Shown here: in pieces, positions 41,467 to 60,492 of the stretch
How positions within the stretch are numbered: the stretch's first letter is position 1
Layout of the letters: each line of letters starts with the position of its first letter
Assembly (NCBI GenBank): GCA_020184695.1
Contig: JAANOX010000275.1
Location: forward strand, 124,001 to 188,000
Reading direction: 5' to 3'
DNA from: Histomonas meleagridis 2922-C6/04-290x
Lineage: Eukaryota; Protista; Parabasalia
DNA: 64,000 bases
Position numbers and translations under genes: made by a program
Notes under the pieces: generated by a model
What the model was told of the DNA's origin: nothing
Seen by the model: only the letters and a program-made list of their open reading frames with translations
The model's database searches: none

Positions 41467-41954
41467 TAAAACAAAATATATATTAAATCTTTTGGTGTAA
41501 ATTCTCATAATGAAATACATAAAATTAATTTGTAATTAGAAGCAAATTATAGTCATTCTACACATAATGTTTAATAATTATAAATTTATGACATAATACT
41601 GTTTCACTGATTCTTCTTTCATTATTGATCTCTTTGAAATAATTAATTTTTTATATAATTAATTAATATTGTGTGAAATTGGATTAATTAATTATATAAA
41701 TTGTACATATCGATCTAAGTTTTGATTTTTAAAAACATAAATTTACTTATTCAATTGAATATTGAGAAATCTTAAAAGAATTTTATGTTGATGAATTGAA
41801 ATCAAAAAAATCATTAAATTTTATGTAACTTAACATTGGCGCCAAAAGGTCACTTTTGCAAATAATCATAACGTACTTAATTCAATAAACGAACAAAGTT
41901 TTCTCAAATTTGTGATTGCAATCAAAAGTGACAAAGGCAAAAAGCCATAAAACG

Positions 41955-49279: not shown

Positions 49280-49947
49280 TTGTCATCGACTTTTGTACTA
49301 AATGCGAATTTGTGATTATAAAGTAAGAAGAATTTTGGATGTTGCGCTCTTTGGTGTCGGTAAATCCCATTTTATTAGACATGAAATGATGCTGAATAAA
49401 TTCATTTTAATAAAAAAATTGAAATTTTTTAACATTGTTGTGACTTAATTAAGAAAATCATTCATTGTACAATTTTTTAATATTTTTTATTATAATATTT
49501 TTATCTGTATTTGTTGTTAGATAAAATTTAGATATTATGTTAGCAAAATGTGGCATCTACTTGTTCCTTAATAGTTATAAAGAAAAATGATTGTCATTGA
49601 TTTTTGCGTCGTAAAAATTTGATTTGTGATGAAGTTAAAAAAGTTGGAATTAGATATGGTGGAATGCTGACCGATAATGAACTGCTTTGTGAGTGGGGGG
49701 CTTGTTTAATACGATGTGTTTTCAAAGAAATGCTGTTCTCAAGGTTAACTATAAATAAGATTGATTAATTGTCCATTTTGATAAAAAAGTAAAGGTTTCC
49801 TCGGAGATTTTTGTTTTCGGGTATTAATGAATTTCATACTTTGGAACATTAAACTAAAATCACTAAGATAAAATGAGCATTTACAACAAAATGAATAATT
49901 GCAATAATAAATCGAAATATGCATCAACATCAAAATGAATAAGTATC

Positions 49948-50395
49948 AAATTCACATTCACAACAAATAAATAATTGTAATAGTCAAAATTCACATTCAC
50001 AACAAATAAATAAATATCAAATTCACATTTACAACAAATAAATATTTGTAATAGTCAAAATTCACATTCACAACAAATAAATAATTATCAAATTCACATT
50101 CACAACAAATAAATAATTATCAAATTCACATTCACAACAAATAAATAAATATCAAATTCACATTCACAACAAATAAATAAATATCAAATTCACATTCACA
50201 ACAAATAAATAAATATCAAATTCACATTCACAACAAATAAATAATCGTAATAGTCAAAATTCACATTCACAACAAATAAATAATTATCAAATTCACATTC
50301 ACAACAAATAAATAAATATCAAATTCACATTCACAACAAATAAATAATTGTAATAATAAGACAAAATTCACATTCACAACAAATAAATAATTATC
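49948..50395. repeat. Minisatellite of 13 units with 32-bp and 39/43-bp variants
   Basis: Near-constant core aaattcacattcacaacaaataaataa followed by linker (a/t)tatc (32-bp unit) or (t/c)gtaatagtca (39-bp unit); unit order B A B A A A A A B A A B' A. Confidence 0.95.
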
Positions 50396-50459
50396 AAATC
50401 CATTTTCATGTTTGCAACTCCAAATTTCCATTTTTATTATGTTATATTTTTCTTACATT

Positions 50460-52940
50460 TCAGTTCCAATTTTTGTGCGACGATGCGCTCAATTGCCTGA
50501 TCCAAATTTTCCTTTCGTTGTTTAGCCACGAGAACTTATGGTTTAGCAGAATCTTCTTCAGTTCCTTCTGTGCGTCCTTATCGTTTATGTTATAAGGGTT
50601 GATCAACTTTGCGAAGTTTTCGTTACCGAAGTTTGTTTTAATGTTATGTTTTTCGAACAAGCTGAATCCATTCAGCAACAAAATGTATTGAATCTTTGCT
50701 GTTTTCATTACGTTCATATGATCCATCACTTTCTTTAATTGGATTTGCATTTGTTTATTTTTATCGATAAATTTATATAAGTTTTGATCCCATAAAACCC
50801 ATTCTCTAAATATTGTCCATGAGCTATTTAACAAACTATCATTATCAGATAACATCATATTAAATAAAATCGGCAAGAAACGATTCATGAAATCTTCCGA
50901 ATCATTTTTCACATAGATAGAAAACAATGAACAAACAGCTCGAAGTAACTTTGATTTTAAGTCGTCATTAATATTTGGTGTATAAAACATTGTTAATATC
51001 GATTGTTTAAATATTGGGAAATGTTCAATGAAACCTTTATCTTTTTTACGTGATTTAAACACTATAACTTTACATATTGATGATAATAATGATATTATTA
51101 AAGTCGACTTCATTGGTACATATTGCATTAAATGAAACATCGCAGTTTGACAATCAGTATAATTAACTTTAAGTCGTGACACTTGGAAATCAATTAATAA
51201 TGATAATAATGGAAATGAATTTAATTCGATGATATATTCATCAGTTGATATTGCATTAGGAGAACTAAAATAATCTTCGACAATAATACGTGAAATATTT
51301 GTATGATATAATAAGAAACTTGAAATTCGTGAAAATGCAAATGAATTATAAAGTTTAAGTTTTCCAATGAATAAATAAAATGGATGGAATTTATTATGAA
51401 TATGTTTTATAAATAATTTTGCATCATTTAAACTTAAGATTATAAAGACTGAAGTATGTAAATCTAATGATTCTTTTGTAATTGATTTATTATATGACAT
51501 AAATATTTCTTGTGAATTGTTCTCAAAGATTAATGACTTCTCGAAATTAAACGCGTTTTTATATGCTTTAATTTGTTCATTAACTTTATTATTAGATCCA
51601 AATTCACGTGATAATACTTCAATAAATTGTAATGAAAATGCAATGTATGTTAACTTCTCAAATATTGGATTCTCTTCTTTAGATTTATAATATGGTTGAC
51701 ATGAATATTGATTCTCACTAAATGTACATATAACATACGTCGAAAATGATACTGATTCGACATCTGAGAAGAATAATGATAAAATTGCTTCTGGTCGGAC
51801 AAGCATAATCTCTTCTAGAAATACATATATACGTGAGATGATTCGTATGTCTTGATAATTCCATTGATGGATTAAGGTGTTAAATTCTTGTAATAACTTA
51901 AATAATAATGGCGTGTTTGTATTGGCTTGGAAATTAATTAATGCTTTAAATTGACTTGGTGATAAATCACTTAAAAATGATATATCATTAACATTAGATA
52001 GTTCTGGTCCAATCCGATTAATATGTGAAAATTCGTTCCGTGAATATCGAATGGCTGATCGATAAAAACTAAAAATCATGTCTTTGTTGTCAATAGATTC
52101 AAAGTTATCGGTAAACCGTTGGATGATGTGTTGTTTCTCAACTTTGATACGGTTAAGTGATTCAATTAGCGGTTTCTGCGACGGTTGCTTCCGGGGGGGT
52201 GCAAGTATGATGGTGTTAATGTCAATAAATAATGTTTGAAGATGTTTATCAGATGGAATGGTTAATGGATCAGCATCTTTGTATTTGTCAGGATCAAATA
52301 CATTGTTGTTTGGTGTTCGTGGTAATTGCGAATTGGTCGATTGTTCAATAGGATTGGGCCTATTAGCTGGAATTTCAACACAACCACCGATTTCGCGAGG
52401 ATGAATAAGAAATTGTTTTCGAGTTTCTAAGTTGCTTTTCCAATTTGACATCGCTTCTAAATATTCTTCATAAGTGTCATAATATAATGGATTAGGTTCT
52501 TGCAGGAACAATTCAGATCCCCAATGCTTTTTTTCTTGGATATATGCACTCATAGGAACTGACTGATTATCAAATGTTGATTGTATTGAAATATTTTTAA
52601 AATCATGACCTAAAACCATCGCCTCATGCATAAGTAAGTTGGCAGAAGGAAATGGGGGATTTTGTTGATAATTGATTCGAAATTTAAAACCTTTTCTAAT
52701 AGGAATGAAATGTGGTACTGGGCGTCTGACACTAATTGATAATGGAAGTGGGAGAGAAATTCCATCTGATAGTGCTGTAACTTCTTCTTCCCATTCTTGA
52801 CATTTTAACATATAATCTTTTTCACTTTTGAAATCATTTGGCAAAGGAAAGAGGGAATACTCGGGCGGTTGCACATGGCTTTCTGTCTTATAATCAGGAT
52901 CTAATATTTTCCCATCGAAATCGCCATGGCAAGAGATCAT
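50460..52940 (-). CDS. Hypothetical protein with twin PxP..[FY].[ST]..[DE]Y......W motifs and a helical/ARM-like C-terminus
   Basis: 826-codon ORF from ATG 52940; motifs PLPNDFKSEKDYMLKCQEW and PNPLYYDTYEEYLEAMSNW. Confidence 0.65.
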   Translation of the reverse strand: MISCHGDFDGKILDPDYKTESHVQPPEYSLFPLPNDFKSEKDYMLKCQEWEEEVTALSDGISLPLPLSISVRRPVPHFIPIRKGFKFRINYQQNPPFPSANLLMHEAMVLGHDFKNISIQSTFDNQSVPMSAYIQEKKHWGSELFLQEPNPLYYDTYEEYLEAMSNWKSNLETRKQFLIHPREIGGCVEIPANRPNPIEQSTNSQLPRTPNNNVFDPDKYKDADPLTIPSDKHLQTLFIDINTIILAPPRKQPSQKPLIESLNRIKVEKQHIIQRFTDNFESIDNKDMIFSFYRSAIRYSRNEFSHINRIGPELSNVNDISFLSDLSPSQFKALINFQANTNTPLLFKLLQEFNTLIHQWNYQDIRIISRIYVFLEEIMLVRPEAILSLFFSDVESVSFSTYVICTFSENQYSCQPYYKSKEENPIFEKLTYIAFSLQFIEVLSREFGSNNKVNEQIKAYKNAFNFEKSLIFENNSQEIFMSYNKSITKESLDLHTSVFIILSLNDAKLFIKHIHNKFHPFYLFIGKLKLYNSFAFSRISSFLLYHTNISRIIVEDYFSSPNAISTDEYIIELNSFPLLSLLIDFQVSRLKVNYTDCQTAMFHLMQYVPMKSTLIISLLSSICKVIVFKSRKKDKGFIEHFPIFKQSILTMFYTPNINDDLKSKLLRAVCSLFSIYVKNDSEDFMNRFLPILFNMMLSDNDSLLNSSWTIFREWVLWDQNLYKFIDKNKQMQIQLKKVMDHMNVMKTAKIQYILLLNGFSLFEKHNIKTNFGNENFAKLINPYNINDKDAQKELKKILLNHKFSWLNNERKIWIRQLSASSHKNWN

Positions 52941-54177
52941 ACGCTGTAAAAACCGTTTATACACGGTTAAAACGGTTATGCTATAAAATTATTTTACAGT
53001 TCAACTCAACTTATTAAAGGAACTTCACGATGATTGAAGTGTTTTACAAAATCATTCTGCATTAATTTATTTTTTCTTGTTTAATTTTGAAATTAAATGT
53101 GATTTTCTTGGATTTCCCATCCATTGCAATGATGATAAAATTTTTTTACGATATCTGGTGGTAATTCATTACAAAGTTGAAAAAATGCTTCCCTTTTTTT
53201 CTCTGGTGTTGAAGAATTCATTTTTTGCAGTCTTGATTATAAGAACTGTCACATACAGATCCTAATTTTGCTCCTTGCGGTGGAAAAAAAGAAACATTTT
53301 ACGTGATGTGATTCGAAATTAATCTGAATAGATTTGTTCGCATGACTTCTAAGGCGATCCATTAATTAATATTTTTGATTGTGTGATGAATCAAATTAAA
53401 TATATAAAATGAATAAAATATTATTAACACATCTTCCTTATGTTCGCATACATATCTACGATAAATAAAAAATAACCAGTCCTATATTGAAATATGCTCG
53501 AAATTCAATTTTCGATTAATTTCACTTTTTCTCGAAAAAATTAAATCAAATGAATAGCAAATTTGATATTGTAAATAATAAGAAAGCATATTGTATCTAT
53601 TATTTATAAAAATATTGAAAATTTAAATTTTGCCTGCGCTTCTTATGTGTATAACAAAACACTATTTTCAAATTCAGGAATTGATTAAAAATTATAGGAT
53701 ATAAACTCTATTCCTTTTTAAATTATGAATAATTTGCATGCCTGAATGATGAATAATTTTTTTTCCTTTTCCTCCTTGAATCAAAACATGTATTTTTTTC
53801 TATACTTTATGATAGCATTTTATAAACGTTATAGTTGTAAATTTGTTTATTTGAAAATTAATTTGTAATTTACTAAAATAATATATCAGCATCAACCAAA
53901 AAATATTATGTTTTTTATTATATTTCAAAATCAATACTTGTGATCTTTTTAATAAATATTCTTGATAATGCAACAAATTAATTTTCTATGAGATCTATCA
54001 AAGTATTCAAAAAGTTTGAGAGTACCCCGAAAAACAAAGTTAAAAAGTGCTTTCTACTAGATTCCAGGACTTGAACGATCATTGTCACATAACAATTCAT
54101 AAACACCCTGTTTATTCTATGGTTTATTTCCATAGAAATATCTGCTTTTTTGAGATAAATGCAATCAGTTTACAAAG

Positions 54178-54618: not shown

Positions 54619-54907
54619 AAATAATTCAAATTATTTTGTTTTTATACTATTTTAGAGCTAAACTCATTTGTCGTAACGTACAGGGCACTCAATTTTTCTA
54701 TTAGGTCATAGAATTTCTAAAAGTGTTTTTGCACCTGGTGCGACTTCCAGTTGAACAACTTAATTTCAACAAGTTGATGAAAACTTGATTATAATTTCTT
54801 CTGTAAAAACGTAACAATACTATTTGGTAATTATTTAATGCTTAATGGGTACAGAAAAATGTTTTCTAAAAAACCGGAATTCGGGGTGGTCTTTAGCCTA
54901 TTGGCTA

Positions 54908-55495
54908 ATGACAAGCAATCTTTCATTAAAAGTTGTTGTTATTGGTGATTCTAGCGTTGGCAAGACATGTATTTCACTTCGTTACCTCACAGATGAATTT
55001 TCAACCCAAACACGCCCCACAATTGCAGCAGGTTTTTGCAATGCCAAAGTAAAGATTGGAAAAACTGATATTGATCTTTTGATTTGGGATACGGCTGGGC
55101 AAGAGGCATACCGTGGGCTTACTTCTCAATACTACCGAGATGCCAAAATTGCACTTATCATATTCGATTTAACAAATCCAGCAACACTAAATTCCGTAAC
55201 GGAATGGAACAAGAGACTCACTGATGTAAACTCAAGCTCCGTTGTTGTATGTCTTGTTGGAAATAAATCTGATTTAGAAAACCGACAAGTTTCAAAAGAA
55301 CAAGGTGAAGCTGTTGCTGCTGAAATAAATGCATTATACAGAGAAACTAGTGCACTGACAGGTAAGGGAATTAGTGAAGTTTTTGAAGATGTTTGCGAAG
55401 AATATTTAAAACAGAATCCAAACGCACTTAACGACAACCGTAATAAAGCAGTTAACCTTAAAGCAAACGAAGGAGAAAAGGGATGTTGCTCATAA
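54908..55495 (+). CDS. Rab-family small GTPase
   Basis: GDSSVGKT, WDTAGQEAYRGL, GNKSD, ETSA, C-terminal GCCS; likely start ATG 54908. Confidence 0.93.
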   Translation: MTSNLSLKVVVIGDSSVGKTCISLRYLTDEFSTQTRPTIAAGFCNAKVKIGKTDIDLLIWDTAGQEAYRGLTSQYYRDAKIALIIFDLTNPATLNSVTEWNKRLTDVNSSSVVVCLVGNKSDLENRQVSKEQGEAVAAEINALYRETSALTGKGISEVFEDVCEEYLKQNPNALNDNRNKAVNLKANEGEKGCCS

Positions 55496-55760
55496 TTCAA
55501 TAAATTTAATTTTGATAGTTCTTTTATAAAAATGTTTTTCACTTCAAATATTTGTGGAAACAAAGTGCTAAATGTTATCGATAATAGGGAAAGCTTTCCT
55601 GTGTGTGTCCATTTCCATTTTTAGGGAATTCCTTAGTCGCACGTTACCATGTCGTTCACATTCAAATAAACTGGTACAAATAAATCGAGAGTACGATAGA
55701 TTGAAAATTAAAAAAATGTTTTGTAAACTTATCAAAATTGAATAAAGGATTATTTCACGA

Positions 55761-55825
55761 ATAATAAAGGCAACTTTTTAAGACGATGAACTTTGGTCAT
55801 CGTCTTAAAAAGTTGCCTTTATTAT
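55761..55825. repeat. Perfect inverted repeat, 29-bp arms with a 7-bp asymmetric spacer (candidate recombinase site or element end)
   Basis: ataataaaggcaactttttaagacgatga-actttgg-tcatcgtcttaaaaagttgcctttattat; arms checked base by base; 106 bp upstream of the tyrosine recombinase ATG. Confidence 0.95.
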
Positions 55826-55931
55826 GTGTAATTCTCATCGACACTTTTTGAAATGAAAATATTAAAAAAAGTAATTTCGCTCACAATTTTCAATATTGTT
55901 TTTAAGTTTCTTTTTATTAATCATATTTAAA

Positions 55932-56837
55932 ATGTCATTGATGGAGCAATTACTTGCTGAAGCTGATACAATATCAGCTGCAAATGTTTCAGCAGGAACG
56001 AAAAGTACATATGATAGGCTGATTCATGCTTATGCCAAAGTGATGATAAATCTAATACACGAAGAACCATTTCCTATTACTCATGACAAAATGGTTGCAT
56101 TCATTATATTTAAAAAGAATCAGAATATGAAATGTTGTACGTTACTAGCTTACATTAATAGTTCTACACATTATTTTCAACAAAATGACTTGGAAATATT
56201 AACACATTCAATAAAATTCAAAATATTTATATGTGGAATAAGGAGGTCACTATATTCAGGTTTTTGTCCGAATGCAAAGTTACCGTTTGATCCAAAATGG
56301 TTTTCGAAAATAATTGAAAAATTTCCATTGACAAATATTGATAATTTGAAGTTTATATTTTTGATATCGTTAATGTTTGCAGCATTTCTCAGAATAAGTG
56401 AAGCGCTAAACCTTAAAAAAAGCGATATTGTAATTGAAGGCGAAAACTTAATAAAACTAAACATACAGACTTCTAAAACAGATCAATTCGGGAATGGTAC
56501 GTTTACATATATTTATGATAATAAGACAAATTATAGCCCATTCCGATTTATAAAATATTTGAACTTAATTTCTAGTAATGATCACATAGAATCTCGAACT
56601 CAATCCACACTCAGAGCTCATCTTCTTTATGTACTTAGGACTATTGGAGTTGAAGAATATCAAAATTATGGATTTCATTGTTTTCGTAGAGGAGCAGCAT
56701 ATTATGTTTCACTAAAAAATGTTAATAATTGTATCATAAAAGCCCATGGAAGGTGGAAAAGTTCTGCATATACTCGATATGTTTCAGTAGACATGAACAG
56801 AGCTGGTATTGAAATTTCAGAGGCACTTTCTATATAA
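55932..56837 (+). CDS. Intact tyrosine recombinase, DIRS/Crypton-type (stand-alone)
   Basis: Catalytic residues R (FLRISE), K (SKTDQ), H-x-x-R (HCFRRG), W (HGRWKS), Y (AYTRY); N-terminal T..TY SAM-like core-binding domain; Inr-like TCATA at 55921. Confidence 0.9.
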   Translation: MSLMEQLLAEADTISAANVSAGTKSTYDRLIHAYAKVMINLIHEEPFPITHDKMVAFIIFKKNQNMKCCTLLAYINSSTHYFQQNDLEILTHSIKFKIFICGIRRSLYSGFCPNAKLPFDPKWFSKIIEKFPLTNIDNLKFIFLISLMFAAFLRISEALNLKKSDIVIEGENLIKLNIQTSKTDQFGNGTFTYIYDNKTNYSPFRFIKYLNLISSNDHIESRTQSTLRAHLLYVLRTIGVEEYQNYGFHCFRRGAAYYVSLKNVNNCIIKAHGRWKSSAYTRYVSVDMNRAGIEISEALSI

Positions 56838-56959
56838 ACAATAAAATTTTTGCGATTTTTAAATTGAATTGAATTTTGTGAACGAAATTATTTTTTTTAA
56901 TTTTTTCATTTTGAAAAGTGGCTTGATAAGATTTTCGATTTTTTAGCAAAAGTCTCTTC

Positions 56960-58207
56960 CTAATTCAAATTATTTATTAAATTTTTTAATCTTTCTTCTA
57001 TAAGTTTTTTTTCGTCGAATCTTAATATACAGAACCATCGACCTTTACATTGTACAGGACGACTGTTTTGCAAACATTTGGAAATATTTCCACATTGATG
57101 ACCAAATTTGCAAATCATATCGTATAGAACTTTATCTTCTCCTTCTGACCAAGGACAGTATGTTCTCATGTTAGATAGAATTTTTTTAAATTCCTATTCT
57201 AAACCTAAAAACCTTGAAATTGAACCTCCATTCATTTCAAGACAAAGCCGTGAACGGTCTCCAAAACCCAAACAAAGATTGTTAATTAATGAAATGTCCA
57301 AATTGTCCCATGTTTGTTCCAAGATCAATTTCAACTCTTCCAGATCTTTTGGGGACCTCTTGTAAATTATTTGCTTCATTATAGCCCAGAGCAACTCGAT
57401 TGGGTTTAGGTCAGGCGAGTTGGCCGGCCAATCATTTATTACATCGACACGATCCTCAAGCCACTCCATAGATTGTACTGAAGTATGGCACCGAGCCCCA
57501 TCCTGAACATAAATCCAATCAAGCTTACCATGGGTTTTGTTCATATCCTCAATAAAATTGGAAGCTTCCATGTTTTGTATATATTGTCCTGAGTCAATTG
57601 ATTTATCTACAATTACTAATTTGCTCTTGTACCCAAAAGATATCACACCATAGATCATTACAGATTTTGAAAATTTGGCCTTTTTTATTATTGTTTCTTC
57701 GACATACTCGCCTTTTCTCATTCACATCCATTCATTATCTTTTCCCAAGACAAATCGCGATTCATCAGAGAAAGCGATCTTGTCAAGATATGATTTTTGT
57801 GTGAGTATTTTTTTTACAAATTCGATTCTTGCTTCTATTTGTTGATGCGTTAAATCTTGTTCTACCTTACAAGGTCTATAACGAAATTTCATTTCGTTTC
57901 TGACCTTTGTAACAGATTGATGGGAAATCGATAAATGAAAACATTCTTCAATTTTATCCGCTAATTCTTTTGAAGATAATGTTGGTTCAAGAAGGGTCTT
58001 TAATTCTATAAATTCTCTAATTTTATTTGTAATAACAACTGATCTTCCTCTTATTGTTGCATCAGGTACTTGACCAGTATTGGTGTATGCTTTAATTGTA
58101 CTGCTTATCCTGTTAGTACCTACATGAAGGGTATTTGCTATTGTTTGATAGTTGTGCCCTAATTTGTACATTTCTATTATTGACTGTTCTTTGTTCCACG
58201 AGGTCAT
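56960..58207 (-). mobile_element. Tc1/IS630-family (DD34E) transposase pseudogene fused in frame to a C-terminal Myb domain (copy 1)
   Basis: Three track ORFs share one frame, split by TGA (57722-57724) and TAG (57194-57196): HTH, FSDESRF, VQDGARCH, WPANSPDLNPIE (34 aa between D and E), then Myb WSEGEDKVL...QCKGRW. Confidence 0.85.
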
Positions 58208-58308
58208 CTGATTTAAATTAATAAACGGTGTTCATTGAAAAAATTCAATATGTTCTCTCAAGCTCGAATTATTTGTACCAGTTTAGAAATTAAACATTTT
58301 CTCTGCAA

Positions 58309-60492
58309 ATGGCGAAATTCTTTAATGGCGAGATCAAAGGAGAGATTTTTCAGCTCCGGAATGAACTGGATGGTAATGATCCAGCAGTTCGAAAGGATGC
58401 TGCCAAACGAGTTGTTAATTTAATGCGAAGTGGCGAAAATGTTCAATCTTTATTTTCCTCTATGCTTCGCTGTGTCAAAACAGACGATCTTGAACTTAAA
58501 AAACTTGTATATCTTTATCTCATCAATTATTCAACACAAGAACCTGAGCAAGCAATTATGGCAGTTAATACATTTATCAAAGATTCCGAAGACAATAACC
58601 CACTTGTTCGTGCCCTTGCTGTTCGTACAATGTGTAGAATTAAGCTTCATAGTGTTGCTGAATACATGGTTATTCCATTAAAAAAATGCCTTCATGATGA
58701 TTCACCATATGTACGCAAGACAGCTGTTTTTGGTGTTACCAAACTTTATGATGTTATTCCCGAAGCCGTTGAGAATGCTCAACTTTTTGAAGATTTATTA
58801 CAATCACTTCAAGACGAGAATCCTATGGTCGTTTCAAACGCGACAGCAGCCATTGCAGAGATAAATGAAAAACGGTCCACACCCATTTTTACACTTAATT
58901 CCCAATCAATCACACCAATATTATCAGCCACCACAAGTTGCACCGAATGGTGTCAAACTATTCTATACGATGCCATCAGTCGATACAAACCCGAGTCTGC
59001 TGACGATGCCGACTTTTTAATCGATCGATTAATTCCATATCTCAAACACAAAAACCCGTCAGTTGTTATAGGTTCCTTCAAGTGTATCTTTTTATTTATG
59101 CCATATTCACATAAGAAAAACGCCGAAATATTCCCACAAATTATACCACCATTTATCACATTAGTCACATCTGCAGAACCTGAAATCCAATACGTAATAC
59201 TTCGAACACTTTCATTGTTCGTACAAAAGTACCCGAAGTCATTAACGCGTGAAATTCGTGTGTTCTTTTGTAATTATAATGATCCATCATATATCAAAAT
59301 GGAGAAATTAGAAATTATTGTAACAATTTGTGGTCCTCAAAACACTCAAATTGTACTCGATGAGTTTTCTGAGTATTGTAACGAAATCGATGTAATGTTT
59401 GTCCGAAAGACAATTAGATGCATTGGAAAAATTGCGATAAAAATCGAAGCATCTGTTCGTAGATGTGTTGATATACTTATAAGGCTCGTTGCAGGTAAAG
59501 CTGATTATGCTATAGAAGAATCAGTGATAGTATTATGTGACATATTACGGAGATTTCCTGGATCTTTCGAATCTACAATAGAAACTATTTGCGGTTCGAT
59601 TGAGCGTCTAAAAGATGCGCGCGCACGTGCTGCTGGAATTTGGATTTTAGGTGAATATTGCGATGTGATAAAAAATGTCGACATATTGTTAGACCCATTT
59701 TTAGATACATTTGGCGATGAACAACCATATGTACAGTTACAGTTGTTAACTGCGTTCGTCAAAGTATATTTGAAAAATCCGGAAAGTTCGAAAGACCAAT
59801 TACAATTCATTTTAAATGAAGCTGTTAAGGATAAATATGTTCCGGATGTTGTTAACAGAGCTTTAATTTATTGGAGATTATTATCTACAGATCAAGACTT
59901 CTCTAAGGAAATTGTCTTTTTCGGCAAGGACAAAATTCAATACGAAAACCAAAAATTTGACGGCGAAGTTTTGACAGAATTAATTCAGAACATGGGAACG
60001 GTTTCCGGGGTGCTCCATGTTGTACCTTCTGATTTTGTAAGAAAGAATCGATTTGTTCCTGAAGCAAACGATGATATCGGGTTTGATAATGAAAACTTAA
60101 GAAATTGGAATAAGGTTAATTTGGATAATGAAAAAATTATAGATATGTTCATTGATTTTGATGAAAATAATTTATACTTACGAATAGCAAATAAATCAAA
60201 TTCAAGTTTGAGCCAATTAGCATTGGCCATAAACGTAAATAAAATAGGCTTAGTAATGAAAGAAAATCCATCTTTTCCAGATGCAATTGAATCTGGAGAA
60301 ATTATAGAAGTTGTAACTCCGATCGAATTTGATCAAAGTAAAGCAGGAAACTATGATAAAAATGAATTGCAAATTGCGTTGAGAACGAACGCTGGAAATA
60401 TATTTGGAATGTGCAATATTCCATCACAAACACAAACTTCACAGACTAAACAACAAGTTAGTGATCAGTTGGTTGATGACTTGTTGATTTAA
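58309..60492 (+). CDS. AP-1/AP-2/AP-4-type adaptor complex beta subunit (beta-adaptin)
   Basis: KGEIFQLRNEL, LELKKLVYLYL, NPLVRALAVRTM, PYVRKTA, IFFCNYNDPSYIKMEKLE-like trunk, WILGEY, VVNRALIYWRLL, Ig-like appendage. Confidence 0.93.
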   Translation: MAKFFNGEIKGEIFQLRNELDGNDPAVRKDAAKRVVNLMRSGENVQSLFSSMLRCVKTDDLELKKLVYLYLINYSTQEPEQAIMAVNTFIKDSEDNNPLVRALAVRTMCRIKLHSVAEYMVIPLKKCLHDDSPYVRKTAVFGVTKLYDVIPEAVENAQLFEDLLQSLQDENPMVVSNATAAIAEINEKRSTPIFTLNSQSITPILSATTSCTEWCQTILYDAISRYKPESADDADFLIDRLIPYLKHKNPSVVIGSFKCIFLFMPYSHKKNAEIFPQIIPPFITLVTSAEPEIQYVILRTLSLFVQKYPKSLTREIRVFFCNYNDPSYIKMEKLEIIVTICGPQNTQIVLDEFSEYCNEIDVMFVRKTIRCIGKIAIKIEASVRRCVDILIRLVAGKADYAIEESVIVLCDILRRFPGSFESTIETICGSIERLKDARARAAGIWILGEYCDVIKNVDILLDPFLDTFGDEQPYVQLQLLTAFVKVYLKNPESSKDQLQFILNEAVKDKYVPDVVNRALIYWRLLSTDQDFSKEIVFFGKDKIQYENQKFDGEVLTELIQNMGTVSGVLHVVPSDFVRKNRFVPEANDDIGFDNENLRNWNKVNLDNEKIIDMFIDFDENNLYLRIANKSNSSLSQLALAINVNKIGLVMKENPSFPDAIESGEIIEVVTPIEFDQSKAGNYDKNELQIALRTNAGNIFGMCNIPSQTQTSQTKQQVSDQLVDDLLI

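Follow-up and report, generated by a model that had tools for sequence, protein, structure and literature searches.

Crypton DNA transposons, whose sole enzyme is a tyrosine recombinase (YR), were reportedly described by Goodwin et al. in 2003. They are usually several kb long, and many of them carry extra domains such as GCR1_C or DUF3504. As YR-only class II elements, they end in terminal direct repeats of 4–6 bp, which are taken to be the substrate of recombination (Kojima and Jurka 2011, PMC3212892; PMC13465315), and they have been described as being without terminal inverted or long repeats (PMC3212892, PMC13465315). Cryptons remain poorly understood: their ends are hard to define and their requirements in cis are not known. 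Recombination sites that are used in a folded form have precedents in bacteria, namely the attC sites of integrons and the attP site of the CTX phage.

We analysed a stretch of 64,000 nucleotides from Histomonas meleagridis (hereafter the window), in which an initial annotation, made from the sequence alone, had singled out a perfect palindrome upstream of a YR gene as the candidate recombination site of the encoded enzyme. Like a Crypton, the element found there has a YR as its only gene, with neither a reverse transcriptase nor a DDE transposase; it carries 4-bp direct repeats at both termini, fitting a crossover core, and its insertion is site-selective. The catalytic R-K-H-R-(H/W)-Y set that characterizes Cryptons is present in its recombinase. 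Unlike Cryptons, it contains inverted repeats (about 90 bp, their tip conserved) and, at one end, a 65-bp perfect palindrome; it measures only 1.18 kb, and it carries no extra domain. The 1179-bp unit holds one sense-strand ORF, the sole other ORF of at least 80 aa being one of 95 aa that runs antisense inside the gene. We have filed the element as one that works like a Crypton but has an end architecture of its own, an assignment made by gene content and ends.

Full-text searches, whose coverage of the literature was incomplete, brought up no account of a recombinase-only transposon from Trichomonas, Tritrichomonas or any other parabasalid, and none of a Crypton that has inverted repeats or hairpins. 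They turned up no publication at odds with the suggestion that such a system is new for parabasalids.

Results

The window encodes an intact, Cre-like tyrosine recombinase

The features of the locus are collected in Table 1. In alignments of the YR family, the catalytic residues R154, K182 (in SKTDQ), H249 and R252 (HCFRRG), H272 and W275 (HGRW) and Y283 are invariant or nearly so. The match of the protein to Pfam PF00589 (Phage_integrase) is weak (E = 0.0019, under the curated cut-off). An AlphaFold model, built on 23 homologues (mean pLDDT 87.8), superposes on Cre over both domains (TM 0.6–0.68, E ~3e-9), and its top full-length structural matches were Cre, followed by XerH, XerA and Flp. 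With a full catalytic set, an ORF of 301 aa and a Cre-like model, the recombinase can indeed be called intact, as had been claimed.

A search of PDB sequences with this protein gave no match, and nothing was on record in an exact-protein look-up. A word-indexed protein search retrieved 39 relatives, mostly stand-alone proteins of about 260–310 aa and nearly all from short (1–4 kb) metagenome-assembled contigs; one of them, TRFO_04238 (32% identity), is from Tritrichomonas foetus. When 1.84 billion cluster representatives were searched with a profile, 150 matches were listed at E ~1e-30 or better, the full-length ones being mostly about 300 aa long. A scan of JGI metagenomes returned distant recombinases only (18–53% local identity) and no close relatives. 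The feature-based nearest neighbours in the ESM Atlas were mostly eukaryotic stand-alone recombinases (from molluscs, sponges, oomycetes and basidiomycetes), and one bacterial integrase cluster was among the top matches. The YR family occurs in trichomonad-type protists.

A perfect palindrome precedes the recombinase gene

The palindrome is the longest perfect inverted repeat of the window, the runner-up in the repeat search being an A/T-only perfect repeat of 18 nt (41650–41700). Even with up to 3 mismatches allowed, the arm sequence was found at two sites only in the window, and none of 100 shuffles contained a match. Folded as single-stranded DNA, the palindrome reached −32.3 kcal/mol (z = −12.1), with values of about −32 and z-scores of about −12 for either strand. 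The gap between the palindrome and the recombinase ATG, at 55932, is 106 nt. The initial annotation was therefore accurate in reporting 29-7-29 perfect arms around the spacer ACTTTGG, in finding no other long perfect inverted repeat and in placing the ATG 106 bp away.

We considered the possibility that the palindrome had arisen by chance or was a fold-back artefact of the assembly, the latter being a concern that the annotation itself had raised. Yet the palindrome is covered by contigs from separate DNA runs of the same organism, and equivalent palindromes are carried by homologous elements assembled from several separate metagenome samples; it is therefore not an assembly artefact of this record. 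Considering also the shuffles and the fold z-score of −12, we give chance or artefact practically no weight as an explanation.

The window holds one further repeated structure, a tandem array of about 13 copies of 32-nt and 39-nt units at 49916–50408, just upstream of an 834-aa minus-strand ORF (50460–52964).

Table 1. Features of the recombinase locus (positions in the window)
Feature	Position	Strand	Evidence or remark
Host Tc1/mariner-type transposon, in which the YR element is nested	55667–58285	-	~1440 bp without the insert
Mobile unit of 1179 bp (palindrome, left inverted repeat, YR gene, right inverted repeat)	55752–56930	+	Empty-site joints, depth
ATTT, left copy of the 4-bp direct repeat (presumed crossover core or target duplication)	55752–55755	.	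Junction comparison
Left palindrome arm	55761–55789	+	29 nt, 100% complementary to the right arm
Motif CAACTTTTT in the left arm (putative recombinase-binding motif, S1)	55771–55779	+	Pattern search, alignment
Asymmetric palindrome centre ACTTTGG	55790–55796	+	7 nt
Right palindrome arm	55797–55825	+	29 nt
Motif CAACTTTTT in the right arm (S2)	55807–55815	-	Pattern search, alignment
Left inverted repeat, tip starting with AATTCTC	55830–55918	+	Alignment with the reverse complement of the downstream region
Motif CACTTTTTGA in the left repeat tip (S3)	55842–55851	+	
Tyrosine recombinase gene, intact	55932–56837	+	301 aa; ORF, alignments, model
Right inverted repeat	56840–56933	-	Same alignment and blastn
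Motif CCACTTTTC (minus strand) in the right repeat (S4)	56913–56921	-	
ATTT, right copy of the 4-bp direct repeat	56931–56934	.	Junction comparison

The palindrome is part of the inserted unit

Contigs of two DNA runs (X1 and X2) and of two RNA runs from the same organism were mapped onto 54700–58400. In both X1 and X2, there are DNA contigs in which 55751 is followed directly by 56931, so that 1179 bp are missing (3 letters at the joint fit either side); the mobile unit was therefore delimited as 55752–56930. A further joint, from 55756 to 56936, is also present in X1 and X2 and again skips 1179 bp; the depth of the two joints is 350–560. ATTT stands at both outer junctions and occurs once in the predicted empty site. 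In other lineages, the junction repeat is AATT (P0006) or TTCA (P0001). In the latter case, the repeated target recurs without interruption further along contig L001, and this paralogue represents an empty site (L001:1527–1931).

The sequence that surrounds the unit is a Tc1/mariner-type transposon, with inverted repeats of 23 nt (55667–55689 and 58263–58285, 22 of the 23 positions being identical) and with DDE_3 transposase ORFs on the minus strand (57194–58207; about 337 aa, with one in-frame stop after residue 161). Hence, the joining contigs represent empty sites: they are paralogous copies of the mariner without the insert. Contigs diverge at 55666 and 58282, the bounds of this host transposon, which has a depth of about 1,000–2,600, some 15–30 times that of unique sequence.

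Comparison with the empty sites places the whole palindrome inside the 1179-bp insert. The initial annotation had envisaged an att- or lox-like site; however, the sequence shared by the junctions is the ATTT at the outer edges, not the 7-bp spacer, and the palindrome is intact in the inserted unit instead of being split between the junctions, so that it is not an att-type integration crossover. Neither is it the joined ends of a circle, since it persists intact in integrated copies, nor a hairpin terminus, since mariner DNA lies on both sides of it. What this comparison upheld was the idea that palindrome and recombinase form a compact mobile system, the 1179-bp unit having inserted into a mariner copy. 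It is the whole unit, from S1 to S4, that inserts, and we infer that the crossover site is the outer ATTT-type core and not the palindrome. An attB or landing-pad role of the palindrome was rejected, the empty site being devoid of it.

The summed contig depth amounts to about 70–90 in the unique flank versus 2,400–28,000 inside ~55752–56930, which indicates that this genome contains tens to hundreds of copies of the YR element; these numbers are rough because the runs consist of contigs, in which rare forms (circles, flips at one locus, excision) are invisible. No contig spanning a circle junction was seen among the run contigs, a material from which rare forms drop out. The ends of the element are 3–6 times deeper than its middle (56188–56559), and internally deleted derivatives thus keep both ends. 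A contig of an RNA run joins 56174 to 56782, skipping 607 nt without GT..AG ends, and loose ends of DNA contigs at 56179 run on with sequence from near 56789. These contigs indicate an internally deleted, non-autonomous derivative that is transcribed at a low level. The YR family is a high-copy and apparently recently active component of the genome.

A dispersed MITE unrelated to the recombinase was also considered. There is no second copy of the palindrome in the window, and its depth (14,223 at 55816 in X1) compares with 20,279 in the next bin, which covers the left inverted repeat. As its depth, by the rough measure that contigs provide, is no higher than that of the adjoining repeat, the palindrome is not an independent MITE.

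Insertion into repeated DNA was also seen elsewhere. Elements of the P0001 lineage (in L001, and also upstream in L005 and L006) are found inside a repeated A/T-rich spacer between coding repeats, and loose contig ends suggest that many copies in the genome of the window lie in the same type of target. In L102 (2411–3559), the YR element of another lineage is situated about 1 kb from a DDE_1/DDE_3 transposase gene, an arrangement that may reflect repeated nesting among transposons. Tandem elements occur in L013 (1737–2006) and L016 (1233–1424), where a second palindrome, together with the left repeat of another, diverged element, comes 0–6 nt after a right end.

A shared motif in the palindrome arms and the inverted repeats

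The left and right inverted repeats are 86.8% identical over 53 nt by blastn and about 80–87% alike overall. The motif of the palindrome arms, CAACTTTTT, is close to the motif of both inverted-repeat tips, and the element contains four copies of a CA(A/C)CTTTTT-type motif, arranged as S1 forward, S2 reverse, S3 forward, gene and S4 reverse. In a ten-sequence alignment, the TTTTT run of the arm motif is invariant and its remaining letters are nearly so. The 9-mer by itself is frequent in the A/T-rich window (13 matches versus 4.4 expected). Since it is common in such DNA, it is the recurrent placement that carries weight and not the number of motifs.

Across lineages, the conserved tip reads AATTCTC, then 3 variable letters, then GACACTTTTTGA, with P0002 and P0020 departing from it by 1–2 letters. 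Among the fetched homologue loci, 19 contain the exact tip pattern; the window contains it once. A match to it in IMG/VR was dismissed as due to chance, being in a phage-like contig with no palindrome alongside.

In the region 55896–55931, within the left inverted repeat, an initiator-like TCATA precedes the recombinase ATG by about 12 nt, so that the element may bring along a short promoter of its own. Leaders in trichomonads are very short. Given these distances, a promoter role seems unlikely for the palindrome itself, which in the family lies 82–158 nt before the ATG.

Placement and pairing of the palindrome are conserved between lineages

DNA around YR homologues was compared from eight lineages. 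The protein identity to the YR of the window is 73% for P0001, 64% for P0002, 48% for P0006, 46% for both P0008 and P0005, and 42% for P0020. Seven lineages, that of the window included (39–73% protein identity), share the same layout and have a palindrome at the same place. In these lineages, the YR gene is situated between imperfect inverted repeats of about 60–110 nt, and the palindrome stands directly outside the left AATTCTC-type tip (GATTGTC in P0020). In none of them is it found alone 3′ of the gene; its place is always on the 5′ side. This recurrent position, together with the compensatory changes in the arms described below, supports the original proposal that the palindrome is cognate to the recombinase.

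Not every copy has it: the L011 copy is without a palindrome, L104 retains one arm only, and no clean palindrome was found in the distant T. foetus relative (TRFO_04238). Because of L011 and L104, the palindrome may be dispensable. In T. foetus (L019:2050–3320, MLAK01000616.1), TRFO_04238 is accompanied by 43-nt inverted repeats bearing CACTTTTTCAG, and the left repeat holds an extra inverted CAAAAAGTTG. Lacking a clean palindrome, this layout is different and possibly older.

In the ten-sequence alignment, 92% of the cells are paired, and changes on both sides are observed in 17 of the 30 pairs. None of 500 shuffles reached these values, and sliding the partner columns reduced pairing to 36–47%. 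As judged from the aligned sequences, the arms differ between lineages but stay self-complementary by compensatory change. When the window is compared with P0001, 24 of 28 positions of the outer arm and 34 of 34 of the repeat tip are conserved; the inner stems of the two have neither sequence nor length in common, but each is perfectly paired. The outer arm looks like a protein-binding sequence, and in the inner part it is the pairing itself that has been kept. The distance between the two conserved arm motifs is 11, 13, 22 or 27 nt depending on the lineage, and the centre measures 3–16 nt.

The centres of the other lineages are GAA, GCGAAGC and CCGAAGG, and also ACGAAGT. Six of the seven lineages are centred on C-GAA-G, GCGAAGC or CCGAAGG, the lineage of the window having ACTTTGG. 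GAA-type centres form extraordinarily stable DNA mini-hairpins (Tm 76.5 °C), and CCGAAGG is found in the ssiA priming signal (PMC13037366). They are on the gene-sense strand in 19 palindromes and flipped in 3, the sense-strand orientation being found in all six GAA lineages. Flipped centres occur in L004, L005 and L018, where the imperfect outer arms keep their orientation; such flips show that fold-back structures form in vivo.

L001 and L003 are at different insertion sites and share the same arm mismatch. Both arms must therefore be inherited as duplex, and a model in which the palindrome is rebuilt from one arm at each transposition, by unfolding of a hairpin, was rejected on this ground.

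Two contigs show unusual structures at the palindrome centre. In L016 (1–357), the palindrome loop is the centre of a head-to-head duplication that comprises the left repeat and the YR gene's first 40 nt, with arms of 173 nt that differ by one mismatch. This is either a real inverted dimer or a graph artefact that arises where both loop orientations coexist. In L003 (108–152), a left arm with its CCGAAGG centre is joined to an inverted flank of the repeated target, without a right arm, about 330 nt upstream of a complete element. The joint may represent a rearrangement at the palindrome centre or a scaffolding error.

Discussion

Comparison with other tyrosine recombinase systems

The site resembles loxP and FRT in that the palindrome consists of two inverted arms around a short asymmetric centre, and the model of the enzyme superposes on Cre. 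(Native FRT contains an additional, third binding element with an accessory role.) A centre of 7 bp, within the fixed 6–8 bp overlap of a lox-type core, can be delimited, but the motifs of the family are 11–27 nt apart, the letters adjoining the centre vary freely, and the integration crossover is outside the palindrome. With a variable motif distance and a centre of 3–16 nt, the palindrome does not readily fit a fixed lox-type spacer.

With integron attC and the CTX attP used by XerCD, the element shares a YR associated with a long hairpin-forming repeat, the conservation of pairing rather than of sequence, and a strand preference. The bacterial sites, however, have imperfect stems, each with two binding boxes and with extrahelical bases, and they recombine in the hairpin, whereas the stem described here is perfect, has one conserved motif per arm and has the insertion junction at its base. 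As with the telomere resolvases TelN, TelK and ResT, a perfect palindrome is found beside a gene of the YR superfamily, and its centre occurs in both orientations among copies; yet the enzyme does not have the size and architecture of a protelomerase, and the palindrome is internal to chromosomal DNA and inserted whole. DIRS elements also combine a eukaryotic recombinase of a related kind with inverted terminal repeats, and the internal S2-AATT-S3 junction resembles joined ends, as does the internal complementary region of DIRS. They differ from the 1.18-kb element, which has no reverse transcriptase, RNase H or methyltransferase. On these defining features, the element belongs to neither the protelomerase nor the DIRS-like group, and membership of the attC-like group is doubtful.

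Proposed role of the palindrome

We propose, as the reading that we hold to be probable though far from certain, that the palindrome is a structure-forming cis module at the left end of a Crypton-like, YR-only transposon in which the crossover takes place at the outer 4-bp A/T core. The recombinase would bind the putative CA(A/C)CTTTTT-type motifs, and the outer 4-bp cores would be where crossover takes place in excision and integration, a circular intermediate being probable by analogy with what has been proposed for Cryptons. Binding and cleavage by the YR are predictions from sequence. The palindrome would act as an accessory module of the left end, whether by providing an extra pair of binding sites or by being extruded as a hairpin or cruciform. 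In this way it would load or orient the recombinase and render the two ends unequal. If it provided duplex accessory sites alone, the perfect pairing of the non-conserved inner stem and the sense-strand preference of the GAA-type centres would remain unexplained.

That preference is what makes one consider a hairpin of single-stranded DNA, formed on a sense-strand intermediate in transposition or repair, where the long hairpin would serve as a priming signal for the complementary strand or as a folded recombination site. The covariation of the whole stem and the presence of C-GAA-G, GCGAAGC or CCGAAGG on the gene-sense strand in 6 of 6 GAA lineages (19 versus 3 flipped) speak for it, as would the GA/GA mismatches beside GCGAAGC, which are expected to stack on the sense strand only. 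Yet ACTTTGG, the centre of the window's own high-copy lineage, forms no GNA loop, there is no sign of single-stranded circles, no replication-type protein is encoded, and the strand bias concerns six lineages only, within which the copies share ancestry. We regard this explanation as possible but unlikely. Somewhat more doubtful is a role of the palindrome centre as a symmetric, lox-like crossover in a reaction other than integration, such as dimer resolution, inversion, or protelomerase-like resolution of a cruciform to hairpin caps. Several lineages allow a 7-bp centre to be delimited (ACTTTGG, CCGAAGG, ACGAAGT, GCGAAGC), and the flipped centres between fixed, imperfect outer arms (L004, L005, L018), the 173-nt head-to-head copy in L016 and the arm joined to an inverted flank in L003 are what such a crossover might leave behind. 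However, spontaneous loop flipping is a known event at any hairpin-forming repeat, and the two contigs may be assembly artefacts, since de Bruijn graphs can generate fold-back contigs where loop orientations coexist. Furthermore, integration uses the outer ATTT and not the palindrome; the letters adjoining the centre are not conserved even at 73% protein identity and bear no resemblance to the inverted-repeat tips; and a protelomerase-like reaction would have to be carried out by a 301-aa Cre-like enzyme without protelomerase additions, on a palindrome internal to chromosomal DNA.

The palindrome could also be a passenger, a miniature non-autonomous element made of two end-like motifs that inserted in tandem at a shared AATT and renders no service to the YR element. 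Its arms are laid out like element ends (an A/T core, 14–15 nt, then the motif), AATT is present between the palindrome and the left tip, tandem arrays exist (L013, L016), and so does a palindrome-free copy (L011). It would then be hard to see why it is always 5′ of the gene and never alone 3′ of it in seven lineages, why the depth shows no excess of solo copies, why its arms are perfectly paired while the element's own inverted repeats are only about 80–87% alike, and why its inner stem is unrelated to the repeats of the partner element. We consider this explanation improbable.

A further idea is that there are eukaryotic YR transposons in which one end provides a structure-specific substrate, i.e. 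a GAA-capped sense-strand hairpin or the four-way junction of an extruded cruciform. Such a substrate would serve in end recognition, in strand-specific priming of replication or in hairpin-capped cleavage. We know of this route so far only from bacterial systems (integron attC, the CTX phage, the protelomerases), and we put the idea forward tentatively, as an unlikely but conceivable one.

Significance

The family represented in the window offers a very small element with sharp ends, filled and empty sites, conserved putative binding motifs and a perfectly paired end module, and a 301-aa enzyme together with about 150 bp of DNA would suffice to test its mechanism. Tool builders, too, could take an interest in a recombinase this compact whose site is defined. 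Since it is present at high copy number in a trichomonad genome and in related gut protists of metagenomes, the YR family matters for the annotation of repeat-rich genomes. If the hairpin is used as a structure, recombination of folded DNA, so far a bacterial theme, would reach eukaryotes.
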